From contig OZ281499.1 in the NCBI GenBank assembly GCA_965637545.1, positions 14,384,001 to 14,448,000 of the forward strand: a stretch of 64,000 nt of DNA, read 5' to 3'. The stretch comes from Phallusia mammillata (lineage: Eukaryota). A program made the position numbers and the translations under genes. Positions 5,478 to 11,912 of this stretch are shown piece after piece. A model generated the notes under the pieces. That model did not search any database and was not told the DNA's origin. It worked only from the letters and a program-made list of their open reading frames with translations. Every line of letters starts with the position of its first letter. Position 1 is the first letter of the stretch.

Positions 5478-5501
5478 ATGTCAGGACGTGGTAAAGGTGG
5501 C
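5478..5501 (+). pseudogene. H2A: 5' fragment of the H2A gene interrupted by the retrotransposon
   Basis: ATG TCA GGA CGT GGT AAA GGT GGC behind an intact H2A promoter, then diverges. Confidence 0.93.
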
Positions 5502-5704
5502 AAAGGATTGGGAAATTAGTCTGATTTCTGCCGGAAAGCTTTAACACAGGGTCGGAAGAGACCCTGTTTTGGATTTACTTATTGGATTTATTCACTGCTC
5601 TCATTGGATTTTGGATTATCCTTAAAGATCTGTGACGCACCACAAACTAAAAGTGGGCGTGGTTACCCCGCCCTTTAAGGTCGTGGGTCATCATTGTTTA
5701 CAAC

Positions 5705-7084
5705 ATGGAGGATGCCCCTGCAGGCTCCTCCATCGGTCTCCATGAGCAACAGGCCACGGGCGGCTCTGCTCCTGAGGCATCGACGCAATGTTCTTCTGCT
5801 GTCAGTACAAGACAGGGAACGCTCCCTAGGGGAGGACCCCCCGCTGCAAAGCGTGGATGGAATAGAGTTGTCAGCGGAGGCACTACAGGGCCCACTGCAT
5901 CCTTTTCACGGGAAACGGAGGTGATGGTTAAATTTCCCGCCAAGAAAACACGGGGGCTCATTTACAAATGGTTAGAGAAGATTAAGTTTCCTCTCCAATC
6001 AATAGAAGGCATTGTCGAAAGGTTTAATGGCCTTACCGACATTACCTGTACATCGAAGGAGAAAGCGAGAGCACTCGCTGAAAGATTGAATACCTTAAAG
6101 GAAGTTGAATATGCCAAACTTCATGATCCGGAATTTACAGACGTCATAATAGAGCATATACCGAATAGGCTTGAATGGGAGCCGATCCTATACCAACTAG
6201 AGCGACGACACGGAGAAGTACGGAAATATTATAAATTGCGGGATCCGCAATACAGAAAATTTAATGGCAAAAGAATCTTCGAGGTGAGAACGAGCGACCT
6301 GAAGGAAAACCCGATACCGAAGAATGTAAGAGTAAGCGGTCTCAAATTCGTAGTGCACTATGACAATCAACCCATCCAGTGTTTTCTTTGTCGAAAGTTT
6401 GGTCACAGAGACCGTGATTGTCCTCAAGAGGATATTGACGTAGAAGATTTTCCTTCTCTGAATATCACCCCTAAAGAAAGCAAACGCAATCACAGTCGCC
6501 ATGCCACTGTAATCAACGCGGTGGCTAACGCAAAGGCCGTCAAAGAGGCATATGAAGAATTGAAGAGAACGGCTGCAATTGCAGATCCGCAAAGCAGTAC
6601 AACGAAAGATTCACTCGATACCAGCGAAGGGGACCCCGTTCCCCCCTCACAGGATGCAACGGATACACCACCTAATGAGGCCCAGGAGGAGGAGGTCCAC
6701 TGCGACTCCTCAACATTAATCACCGATTCCAGCGGCGAAGCAGGGGACGGAGAGGAGACTTCGGAGGAGGAGAAGGAGGAGACCTCGGAGGGAAACGGCT
6801 TTACAAAGGTCAGCAGAAAGAGGCGAGGGAGGTCTACTCCCTCCCCTAACAATAACATTAAGAAAAAGTTGCAAAAAATATCCAAGTGCCCGTGTGGGCG
6901 CTTTGTGGGAGAACCAGGTCCGGGCTTGCAGAAGGTCTGCGAGGGCTGTTCCGCAATCACTTTTGGTTGTGCTTGCGGTTCAGTTCTCGCAGTCCAACCC
7001 GGACATACAACAACTTGCCCAAAGTGCGAGAGGACTTACCATCCTCATACGCACCACGCTAGTGACCCGGGTGGTCAAACGTAA
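5705..7084 (+). CDS. Retrotransposon ORF1 (gag-like nucleic-acid-binding protein)
   Basis: 459 aa; CX2CX4HX4C knuckle CFLCRKFGHRDRDC (6380-6421), acidic linker, basic patch RKRRGR, C-terminal 8-Cys domain. Confidence 0.9.
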   Translation: MEDAPAGSSIGLHEQQATGGSAPEASTQCSSAVSTRQGTLPRGGPPAAKRGWNRVVSGGTTGPTASFSRETEVMVKFPAKKTRGLIYKWLEKIKFPLQSIEGIVERFNGLTDITCTSKEKARALAERLNTLKEVEYAKLHDPEFTDVIIEHIPNRLEWEPILYQLERRHGEVRKYYKLRDPQYRKFNGKRIFEVRTSDLKENPIPKNVRVSGLKFVVHYDNQPIQCFLCRKFGHRDRDCPQEDIDVEDFPSLNITPKESKRNHSRHATVINAVANAKAVKEAYEELKRTAAIADPQSSTTKDSLDTSEGDPVPPSQDATDTPPNEAQEEEVHCDSSTLITDSSGEAGDGEETSEEEKEETSEGNGFTKVSRKRRGRSTPSPNNNIKKKLQKISKCPCGRFVGEPGPGLQKVCEGCSAITFGCACGSVLAVQPGHTTTCPKCERTYHPHTHHASDPGGQT

Positions 7085-7132
7085 TCTATATTATCTTTGC
7101 ATCCTTTTATTTACACTGCCTAATTTTTTTTA

Positions 7133-10100: not shown

Positions 10101-10546
10101 ATTGCCTTCCCCTTTCTACAAAATTTTCCCATTTCCTTCTCGACAACGACACATTGTGCCCCTTCTGTCAAAACTTCGCCGAAACAACATGGCATATTTT
10201 TGCTGAATGTTCTCAAATTCAACCGGTTTGGCGCGAGGTGCACCAACTCATCACTCGTGCCACTGGGTGCACCTCGTTAAACATTTCAATTGCTTTGATC
10301 ATCAATATGGAAATACCACCGCCCCTGGAGTACTGGTCCGACCTTTTAATTTACTTGATTTCTGTTACGAAACATAGTATTTGGATACATCGCAACAAAA
10401 TAAAATATGATAAAATACAACCCTCAACCAACAAAATTTTTTTGTCTGTTAAACAATCCATCATTCACCGACTTTTCTTTGAGAACAAACGCCGTGATAC
10501 CACTTTTTTACCAGTACTCCAGGGGCTGAGGGAAGCCCTAAGGTAG
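7133..10546 (+). CDS. Retrotransposon ORF2: APE endonuclease, reverse transcriptase, C-terminal CCHC motif
   Basis: 1137 aa. Endonuclease motifs TLNCRGL, LQETH, GDFN, SRLDRFY, SDH. RT motifs KSPGPDG, NYRPISLLN, LDFKKAFD, GVRQGDPLS, YADD. C-terminal CPFC-x8-H-x4-C. Confidence 0.97.
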   Translation: MADYLKITTLNCRGLADDARRLAVFESLRQLEVHVVLLQETHSRIEQEETWTRQFGPSRALFYSNQNNKSVASNGVAILLIHPSLSFVSHHGDRDGRVVVADIKIFTQYVHVINVYAPEKDIKAAIRKSFFENLYPFVTSNHPIILAGDFNGVEQPGLDRFPPSKRNNTAMVPLRQLCHDFQLSDTFRSLHGNKHIFTRRQGNSQSRLDRFYVNNSIQPIHEKTQNFSLSDHDAVILTVQIGPLPQRGSPPWKNNVAAYDEHFQEELSNRWPRWLTLEEHLFENAPSWWMLIKQKIKSLNIQNSKRLAKLQKQEQKDLERKVLELWEGMAENPSLLPQYYTLKKQLATLLRNRAKKKITRDRLLSFEQGDRGTKEFFQRFAQNRQRTLIESLVDDSGQANSDIPFILEKTAKFYENLFSASNVNEPIQEQFLNNIHPKFSENACLALTEIISKEEIERALATFKAGKSPGPDGLSFEFYKLNWGTIGTKFTEIINCIHNGQIPSNFNDGLITLIHKKNDKDQLGNYRPISLLNSDLKIYSKILSLRLKAILPDVVQPHQFATPGKKISEATTLLRDLLHEAQRRELNYYFISLDFKKAFDSIAHTWLWKVLSKLGFPQQYINNIKNLYREGSSKILVNGFSTRSVPIRNGVRQGDPLSLYLFVLAIEPLAQAFQDDPSVEGIRLPGRHLIKCPSYADDVTLTLTHSYSVNKAFHILDLFYLASGLKINPEKTKGIKPSNLNTSTQLPDINWSESKLDILGISIGPQKTIQNLWEANTQKLKQEISLLKRYPCTWNAKSLLSKAKLLPHLSYTANLYPLPGDIAEKVNAMVEKYVCGSRRVALPIETLSKPFDRGGYNVANIPLYCDLLYLSNIYQYCKHRENNLTTTPGLALTEYNIGHQLSRQFGFRLINSTPHADVPSPFYTHSLKLIDKYKLKLETLLNGKIRNLYRSLNCSPSGTLHPSQSDHWRSIHHPILSNNLRTLNYRITWNCLPLSTKFSHFLLDNDTLCPFCQNFAETTWHIFAECSQIQPVWREVHQLITRATGCTSLNISIALIINMEIPPPLEYWSDLLIYLISVTKHSIWIHRNKIKYDKIQPSTNKIFLSVKQSIIHRLFFENKRRDTTFLPVLQGLREALR

Positions 10547-11552
10547 TCAGCCAATTACTTGTGTTGTCATTATTTAATTTGTTTTGTTTTTCCGCTTACG
10601 TTTTTTCTTTTTCCGATTATTACTATTTCCCACTTACCCATGTCTACAATTTATATCCACTTTTACGACCGGGTAAAAAAAAAAAAAAAAAAAAAAAAAA
10701 AGCAAATGCGCACAGATATATACCAAACTTTGTACTAAATGAAGGTATATAATACGCATTCAAATATATATGAATGTAACTGTCAACGGTCATTAGACAA
10801 CATTGCCCATGTTGCTTATTATGTTTATGTTTCTATCGTTTTTCTCAGTCCTTCACTTCACACCCGGTTTTCTGTTGTTTGTCCGAAAAAAAAAAATAAA
10901 AAAAATACCTACATACATTTGTGTGCATGTGTATTTATTGTGTATGTGATATGTATATATGTCCTGTTTTTGTCGTCGATGTGTTTCGTCCTTTTCTCGA
11001 GAAATATGCATAAAATGCGCATGTAGCACACATCCGCTATACATATACTTGTTGCCATAGTCACGTTACCCCCCGCTCATCGTGCTTCATCGGTCTCATC
11101 CGATATATAAATATATTTATACAGCGACCATTCTATTGGCACTTAAACTAATGACATCCTGTTCACTATCTAATATTTGTATATAATATCATTGTTAACT
11201 ACGCTCATCTCTTTATTTCTGTATTTGCGCTATTTAATAATATTAATAAATAATAATAACATAATTAGGCTCTATATTTCTTTCCTTTTTCTCTGCCATA
11301 ATTATTTGTTTTGTAAACTATTATCATTTATTGCGTACATGCTATTGCAGTGTTTCTATTATTATAATATTTTGTATGTATTTAACTCCGTTGTGTTACA
11401 TCAATTTGTCTTCGTAATATAAAAATTTGTTGTGATATACCAAATGGTGTGTTTGTAATCCAATGTGCTTTCGCAATGTATTATGTTGTTTTTCGCATGT
11501 ACGATTTTTCGGTTGTGTAATTTCTTTTTGACCTATGTCAATAAACAAAAAT

Positions 11553-11912
11553 GGTGGCGGTAAGTCCAAGGCAAAGCCCAAAAGCCGATCGTCGCGCGCT
11601 GGACTGCAGTTCCCGGTCGGTCGTGTGCACAGGCTTCTGCGCAACGGCAACTACTCGGACCGGGTGGGAGCTGGCGCGCCCGTGTATCTGGCCGCGGTGC
11701 TTGAATACCTTAGCGCCGAGGTTCTCGAGTTGGCCGGCAACGCAGCCCGCGACAACAAGAAGACCCGCATCATCCCGCGCCACCTGCAGTTGGCCATCCG
11801 CAACGACGAGGAGCTGAACAAGCTGCTCAGCGGAGTCACCGTTGCGCAGGGCGGCGTCCTGCCCAATATCCAGGCCGTCCTTCTGCCAAAGAAGACCTCC
11901 AAGAAAGCCTAA
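11553..11912 (+). pseudogene. H2A: 3' portion of the interrupted H2A (open reading frame from an element ATG at 11535)
   Basis: Resumes at GGT GGC GGT AAG, identical to intact copies; stem-loop retained. Confidence 0.9.

Follow-up and report, generated by a model that had tools for sequence, protein, structure and literature searches.

Why does an intact retrotransposon lie within the coding sequence of a histone H2A gene, and did it reach this position by chance or by a mechanism that recognizes histone genes? This question is raised by a 64,000-nucleotide stretch of the Phallusia mammillata genome (C6:14384001-14448000 of a 240-Mb assembly, in which C6, C38, C3 and similar names are contig labels), hereafter called the window, to which all positions given without a contig label refer. 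Within the H2A gene that starts at 5478, a 6.05-kb retrotransposon without long terminal repeats (non-LTR) occupies positions 5502-11552 in sense orientation; this element and its copies are here designated family A. The explanation that we favour, with a probability of about 0.85, is that it represents a young and probably still active long interspersed nuclear element (LINE) with an apurinic/apyrimidinic endonuclease-like (APE-type) nuclease, belonging to the L1 superfamily and Tx1-like, which integrates by target-primed reverse transcription at one nucleotide of the 5' coding sequence shared by H4 and H2A.

Insertion junctions and copies across the genome

At the 5' junction, the first eight codons of H2A from ATG to GGC (5478-5501, + strand) are followed by a 14-nt head (5502-5515, +) that is identical to codons 9-13 of H4, is absent from H2A and is the same in all seven H4 genes of the window, after which the element proper begins. 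On the 3' side, the last base of the element is 11552, and H2A resumes immediately with GGTGGC, from codon 7 to its end (11553-11912, +). An earlier note on this DNA had seen GGTGGC on both sides of the insertion (5496-5501 and 11553-11558) and had placed the insertion after codon 8; the flanking repeats were correctly observed, but the codon-8 reading derives from the GGTGGC overlap and the exact insertion point is after codon 6, counting the methionine (AAA|GGTGGC). Since the 3' junction always consists of the element end followed by GGTGGC, the bottom strand would be nicked between AAA (Lys, codon 6) and GGTGGC, i.e. between 11552 and 11553. The left flank matches an empty array unit with no mismatch in 1024 bp, and the right flank with no mismatch and one 2-bp gap in 2000 bp, which indicates that the insertion was precise and is young relative to the homogenization of the array. 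One of the four H2A genes of this array (488, 5478, 16526 and 21519, all on the + strand) is occupied, in line with the recent, single-unit insertion that had been proposed.

The window contains two tandem histone arrays followed by an AT-rich region. The first array (1 to 24.4 kb) has a period of 4993 bp and carries its H3, H4, H1 and H2B genes on the - strand, while the second (24.7 to 44 kb) has a period of 6198 bp; a gap of 200 N at 24459-24658 lies between the two, which are of opposite gene orientation. The target site AAAGGTGGC is present in each of the 17 H2A and H4 genes that the two arrays contain, as the earlier note had stated, and over its 24 nt H2A and H4 are identical at 22 positions, reflecting the coding sequence for SGRGKGG that they share. 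A pattern of this site from ATG to GGC, with synonymous differences allowed, gave 103 matches in the whole assembly, all of them within histone arrays (C6 14.22-14.43 Mb and small unplaced contigs), and the reversed control pattern gave none in the same assembly. Family A fills three of these 103 sites.

The whole genome was searched with four parts of the element, namely its two ends, its last 113 nt and ORF2 (the second open reading frame, ORF). Eight family A 3' ends were found genome-wide, which together with a relic in the window makes nine, all with a shared terminal motif, and seven of these nine adjoin H2A or H4 sequence from the same GGTGGC, always in sense orientation. Tabulated in this way, the flanks uphold the histone gene targeting that had been put forward from the window alone, as just two old copies (72-79% identity) lie in non-histone DNA. 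An H2A copy on C38 is 100% identical to the window copy over 6675 bp including the flanks, its upstream units differ from those on C6, and it represents either the other haplotype or a duplicate produced by array dynamics. An H4 copy located 85 kb upstream (C6:14298857-14304916) differs from the window copy by nine substitutions and three indels in 6037 nt (99.8% identical), with both ORFs intact and in sense orientation. It is preceded by the H4 leader, the ATG and the codons to GGGAAA, and beyond its 3' end GGTGGC and the same codons occur a second time, the target duplication being of 20 bp and beginning exactly at AAA|GGTGGC.

Older insertions show the same habit. Behind one copy in H4, 90-93% identical, the H4 gene continues from the same position in a decayed state, and two older copies form head-to-tail tandems, in which a 3' end is joined through a 15-nt H4-derived spacer to the 5' end of the next copy; these tandems appear to have arisen by insertion into the duplicated target. 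Outside the arrays, the window relic (47872-47958, +) consists of the family 3' terminal motif (47872-47884) and about 70 nt of decayed H4 coding sequence that extends to about 47958. BLASTN and TBLASTN searches of the element against the window tail gave no match at 47.9 kb, and the H4-associated relic that had been suspected there was confirmed as real through its H4 match and a manual alignment of the 3' end. In H4, the distance from the nick to the second-strand break further downstream is 20 nt for the young subfamily and 15 nt for its older counterpart, which implies real target duplications. Hallmarks of target-primed reverse transcription are present, namely the 20-bp and 15-bp duplications, the same 3' terminus throughout and one copy truncated at position 87.

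The H4 sequence at the 5' end of the H2A copy, likewise recognized earlier, is explained by the near-identical H4 sister copy, in which the same 14 nt are part of the 20-bp target duplication. Because these 14 H4-specific nucleotides are absent from the H2A target, they belonged to the RNA that was reverse transcribed, and an H4 head in the template implies that this RNA began upstream of the element, inside an H4 gene. Just six nucleotides are shared beyond the 3' junction, so that an origin by recombination at the DNA level is unlikely. The head thus shows that the H2A copy descends from a copy resident in H4, which makes H4 the ancestral and main target, H2A being reached via the shared SGRGKGG sequence. 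Bases 5489 and 5492 are of H2A type (T), which places the join between H2A DNA and H4-type cDNA within the nine shared bases 5493-5501; the GGTGGC repeat in H2A may represent either a 6-bp target duplication or a mere overlap of the H4-derived RNA head with the target.

Anatomy and transcription of the element

Both ORFs are uninterrupted, and the description of an intact L1/Tx1-type element in sense orientation within H2A holds, leaving aside the Tx1 affiliation that is considered below. A 5' untranslated region (UTR) of 189 nt (5516-5704, +) is followed by ORF1 (5705-7084, +), encoding 459 residues with one CCHC zinc knuckle at residues 226-239, a weak match in Pfam, and a Cys-rich C-terminus. 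ORF2 (7133-10546, +) encodes 1137 residues comprising an APE endonuclease (residues 4-240; PF03372, E 8e-17), a reverse transcriptase (RT; residues 514-761; RVT_1, PF00078, E 8.5e-36) and a C-terminal zf-RVT domain. The RT catalytic motif YADD is present at residues 695-698, and alignment to the L1 endonuclease shows that the catalytic positions N, E, Y, D-N, D and D-H are kept. The AT-rich 3' UTR of about 1 kb (10547-11552, +) includes internal A runs and is common to all copies, and is therefore part of the element; the internal A run at 10676-10702 was considered as the true 3' end and rejected, since all copies continue identically to 11552. The 3' end signal (11528-11552, +) comprises a hairpin with a 5-bp stem and a 4-nt loop and an AAAAAT tail without poly(A), both of which are conserved across all family A copies, and AATAAA is found 8 nt before the element end, so that cleavage would be expected within the GGTGGC region beyond it. 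Folding of the last 90 nt was no better than that of shuffled sequences (z 0.19), just the small terminal hairpin being conserved, and no match to the histone stem-loop was found within the element.

The element interrupts the histone frame and restores it at its other end. A TAG at 5517-5519 ends the histone frame after 13 codons, leaving a short upstream ORF from the histone ATG, and an in-frame TAG at the junction is also present in the older subfamily, despite a junction that lies 5 nt earlier. The last 18 nt of the element begin with ATGTCA and are in frame with the downstream H2A sequence, restoring a frame of 125 codons (11535-11912), the product of which starts with MSINKN instead of MSGRGK; the same restoration is seen in the H4 copy. 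The ATG of the restored frame overlaps the terminal hairpin, which is also kept by relatives at non-histone sites, so that the restored H2A frame may be a by-product. In the 5' UTR, a hairpin is predicted by folding at about 5546-5567 (8-bp stem, 6-nt loop). Both old and young copies of family A retain its stem GGGTC/GACCC, the 6-nt loop being variable, and comparable stems occur three times in the 3' UTR of a related family described below as C (about 5470-6110 of one copy); this hairpin may be a candidate protein-binding signal.

With regard to transcription, the stretch is present in 20 runs from 8 studies, and contigs of four of these runs (X3, X5, X9 and X12) were placed on 5250-11240, where 5250-5449 corresponds to the H2B-H2A spacer. 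The spacer exceeds the element in depth 19-fold in X5 and 39-fold in X12, a ratio that DNA should show with tens of histone units per element copy. X3 and X9 show a spacer depth of 2.3 and 0, respectively, and element contigs that span 5493-11159, nearly the whole length, at a depth of 10-15. Being rich in the element and poor in the spacer, these two runs behave as RNA, and it follows that the element is transcribed. Their contigs begin at 5493, within the histone coding sequence and 23 nt 5' of the first base of the element. This start coincides with the point at which H2A-type and H4-type flanks diverge, as a de Bruijn graph would give if both chimeric forms were present. X3 furthermore contains a loose contig end in which 33 nt of the H4 leader precede the ATG.

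The H4-derived heads prove read-in transcription for those RNAs that were copied, and co-transcription of the element with a histone gene is likely. The H2A promoter has a TATA box at 5384-5391 (+), about 90 nt 5' of the H2A ATG and the same in empty units, which is the likely driver of a chimeric transcript composed of the H2A leader and the element. X12 carries solely alleles of the H4 copy, which hints that the H2A insertion is polymorphic. Another run, X17, which bears the label of a second species, contains 63% of the 31-mers from the 5' 2 kb of the element, and this points to a near-identical family in a close relative or to a hybrid sample.

Mechanism of targeting and rival explanations

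In the explanation favoured here, the element would have little or no promoter of its own and would be read from a histone promoter as a chimeric mRNA, in which the histone ATG would open the 13-codon upstream ORF and the first TAG of the element would close it. The H4-type cDNA head would pair with the near-identical H2A or H4 sequence, producing a seamless 5' junction, while the exact 3' end, with its hairpin, AAAAAT tail and nearby AATAAA, would let transcripts run a few bases into GGTGGC, and this short read-through would pair with the nicked bottom strand of the target. About 100 tandem histone sites would thereby provide a safe and highly transcribed landing zone.

Several points weigh against this account. 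Two old copies, at C6:22.8 Mb (79% identity) and C3:1.08 Mb (72-79% identity), have no histone gene beside them; both keep the exact 3' end, and the first 9-10 flank bases of the former may be a decayed H4 tag, a resemblance that is not compelling. Independent events are few, and the two 100% identical H2A copies may go back to a single event, which would leave two or three young events. As regards the mechanism, the pairing of a 3' read-through with the target is a model borrowed from the R1 and R2 elements, and the element may have an internal promoter. As regards its transcription, the RNA status of X3 and X9 is an automatic guess that has the depth argument as its sole backing, the junction is crossed by 23 nt, below the bridging threshold of 31 nt, and the X3 contig with the H4 leader could be ordinary H4 mRNA.

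The relatives of the element bear on the source of the specificity. The search of the genome with ORF2 revealed three further intact families (B, C and D). Family D (39% ORF2 identity to A) ends in a poly(A) tail, by which three copies (C57, C261 and C6:14351602-14357101) are joined to H4 at the same GGTGGC as family A; the 5' junction of these three lies in the H4 5' UTR, and about 21 nt of the target including the ATG are deleted. Other D copies end in codon 5 of H1 or in the H2A 5' UTR, and three D copies have as their head the H4 leader, which begins near the transcription start and abuts an H2A ATG in antisense. Family B is represented by an intact copy at C6:14290864-14294268 (- strand; 63% ORF2 identity), the 3' end of which lies in sense in the H2A 5' UTR about 37 nt before the ATG. 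Family C (45% ORF2 identity) comprises at least 18 copies, most of them intact (C6:13.45-13.67 Mb, C3:11.24-11.33 Mb, C5:24.4-26.9 Mb, C11 and C215), which have the same end motif and differing non-histone flanks, some of them 7.7 kb apart. Its 98% identity to a 'Pol-like protein' from Phallusia mammillata marks the host as this ascidian or a very close relative. Beyond this genome, the end of a related LINE in the assembly ERZ26051151 (contig 5520-6450, - strand) lies, in sense orientation, immediately in front of approximately codon 9 of an H2B gene that has 90% amino acid identity to the H2B of this genome, and several nested or tandem relatives are present on the same contig. Family A is part of a small radiation of ascidian LINEs at histone gene starts.

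The nearest outside proteins have 41-45% identity to ORF2. Two contigs of another sample contain full related elements (41% identity) with one shared non-histone 3' flank, which suggests a different specific target; next to family C and the external relatives, a search of Rfam found no RNA gene. In the 5' UTR of these two outside relatives (positions 280-410 in one, 80-110 in the other) there are one to three hairpins of the same build as the stem-loop at histone 3' ends, with a stem of 6 bp and TTTC or TTTT as the loop, and a look-alike of the histone stem-loop is also found at about 320-297 (- strand) in a family D copy of the window. This D copy, the 5' end of which lies in 1-487 on the - strand, extends upstream to C6:14377579 and is intact. 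It is one of the three with an H4 5' UTR head, which here meets the ATG of the H2A gene at 488 in antisense; since its 3' end falls in codon 5 of H1, the unit is without H2B and the start of H1. Another D copy (C6:14313075-14318556) has H2A flanks in opposite orientations, with an antisense H2A ATG at its 5' side and a sense H2A 5' UTR at its 3' side; as it is located where the orientation of the array changes, an inversion breakpoint is suggested.

These relatives lend some weight to the view that the histone aim has a source other than recognition by the endonuclease, namely tethering to transcribed histone 5' ends or to the histone locus body, or guidance by histone sequence in the RNA of the element, with a nuclease that is itself loosely selective. 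Family D uses the same H4 position but also H1 codon 5 and the H2A 5' UTR, sites that lie within a few tens of bases of histone starts and whose bottom strands share little beyond a T run, family B lies in the H2A 5' UTR, the element in the other assembly lies in H2B, and the RNAs of these elements demonstrably carry histone heads. Against this stands the use of one exact nucleotide in all seven histone-associated family A copies, in two genes that share the local sequence, as a sequence-specific nick predicts, and the exact 3' end kept by both old off-target copies also speaks against tethering or RNA guidance. We regard such a source as unlikely, although this view overlaps with the favoured explanation and differs from it just in where the specificity comes from.

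Far less probable is a chance insertion into a histone gene that was then spread by unequal crossing-over or gene conversion, without any target preference. The complete identity of the C6 and C38 copies over 6675 bp including flanks would fit array duplication, or equally two haplotypes, but copies are present in both H2A and H4, whose 6 shared nt beyond the 3' junction are too little for recombination. Nor does such a spread account for the 20-bp duplication of the H4 copy, the 15-bp duplications and head-to-tail tandems of the older copies, H4-flanked decayed copies at distances of up to 340 kb, the relic outside the arrays, or the other families with the same habit. That the element was misjoined into a collapsed histone repeat during assembly is hardly credible: tandem arrays are indeed hard to assemble and the gap at 24459-24658 lies close by in the window, but the stretch occurs in 20 runs from 8 studies, 31-mers of the junction from 5493 onwards are found in contigs of four runs, and the flanks are in perfect register with empty units.

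Site-specific integration in H4 and H2A, as favoured above, can be extended into a broader proposal that we put forward only tentatively. The element would be an obligate parasite of replication-type histone coding sequence, which lacks a promoter and is carried by that of the histone gene, whose own first TAG, as part of the element, closes the histone start so that ribosomes reach ORF1, and whose last 18 nt re-create an ATG and five codons so that the gene still encodes a full-length H2A or H4 with an MSINKN tip. Its integration would be guided by the nuclease and by histone sequence at both ends of the RNA, and it would form one branch of the ascidian LINE radiation at histone gene starts, together with B, D and the H2B-associated element.

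Classification and comparison with known systems

The best match of ORF2 among PDB structures is LINE-1 ORF2p (E 2.5e-68), colinear over residues 4-880. In an ORF2 tree (LG+G4, quick search), families A and B, C and D are united with the nearest outside proteins in one clade (Shimodaira-Hasegawa-like approximate likelihood ratio test, SH-aLRT, 100), which is sister to a group that includes an amphioxus protein (union 99), neither group falling in the clade (100) that unites the L1 elements of fish, frog, lizard and mammals. From these comparisons, the element is best classified as an APE-type LINE of the L1 superfamily that lies outside the vertebrate L1 clade. Its position in this tree, which was built without a labelled Tx1 sequence, fits the Tx1 group, and it is in this sense that the element is called Tx1-like; a Xenopus match considered as a Tx1 representative proved to be vertebrate L1-like and was rejected. 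The Tx1 clade was reportedly defined through RT phylogeny by Kapitonov and colleagues in 2009.

Known targets of site-specific LINEs are rDNA, small nuclear RNA (snRNA), tRNA, 5S and spliced-leader genes, telomeres and microsatellites, all of them non-coding repeats. The earlier note knew of no well-characterised family targeting H2A or H4, and the literature searched likewise yielded no report of a LINE that targets histone genes, although subscription papers and Repbase Reports were thinly covered and an earlier description is possible. Histone gene starts as a target class for such LINEs thus appear to be undescribed. With a family that aims at the coding start of histone genes, the notion of a genomic safe haven extends to mRNA genes transcribed by RNA polymerase II (pol II), and transposon expression becomes tied to the histone programme linked to S phase and oogenesis. 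Such a family also offers a natural system to understand how an APE-type endonuclease recognizes a target as short as the roughly 20 nt common to H2A and H4, possibly aided by pairing between RNA and target, and it is of relevance to the annotation and assembly of tunicate histone clusters.

Vertebrate LINE-1 resembles the element in the domain order of ORF2 and in the catalytic residues of endonuclease and RT, but differs from it in that the element falls outside the L1 clade, has a CCHC knuckle in ORF1, lacks poly(A) and uses a nick site that is not the T-rich L1 consensus. Closer in habit are R1 and R2 of 28S rDNA, studied by Eickbush, Fujiwara and colleagues, which are strictly site-specific, are transcribed together with their host gene, have a precise 3' end that does not depend on poly(A), form tandem copies and occupy a minority of units. 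The element shares with them its site specificity in a tandem multigene family, its exact 3' end, its tandem copies and the minority of units filled. R2 has a restriction-like endonuclease and R1 belongs to another APE clade, and both reside in genes transcribed by RNA polymerase I, their RNA being processed from the rRNA precursor, whereas the host transcript of the element is a pol II histone mRNA. SLACS, CZAR and NeSL-1 are restriction-like-endonuclease elements in the non-coding spliced-leader RNA genes of trypanosomes and nematodes; like them, the element is site-specific and lies in sense orientation in pol II-transcribed tandem genes a few bases after the transcription start, and it is set apart from them by their type of endonuclease and by their non-coding host genes.

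Within the Tx1 group, a preference for particular targets has been described, some families carrying heads that derive from snRNA targets, and the targets of this clade comprise U2, U5, 5S, satellites, transposons and microsatellites (PMC4494074). Preference for multicopy genes, which is typical of Tx1 rather than defining, is seen in the element as well, with seven of nine 3' ends at one H4/H2A position. As Kojima and Fujiwara (2004) are cited in PMC4494074, Keno, Mutsu and Dewa are Tx1-clade LINEs for U2 snRNA genes, 5S rDNA and tRNA arrays, respectively. On the basis of that citation, the element is like these three in being APE-type with two ORFs, in using one position of a tandem multicopy gene in a fixed orientation and in having few copies per genome; they reside in small RNA genes transcribed by RNA polymerase III or by snRNA-type pol II, whereas the target of the element is replication-type histone coding sequence, in which it breaks the reading frame after codon 6 and seems to borrow an mRNA promoter. 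The Tx1-Mar families with U1- or U2-derived heads offer a parallel for the 5' end, since in both cases a piece of a host gene was acquired by read-in transcription and passed on by retrotransposition; in Tx1-Mar the heads come from snRNA and the insertions are into Mariner transposons (PMC4494074), whereas the head of the element comes from its own target gene, H4, and was reused at the paralogous site in H2A.

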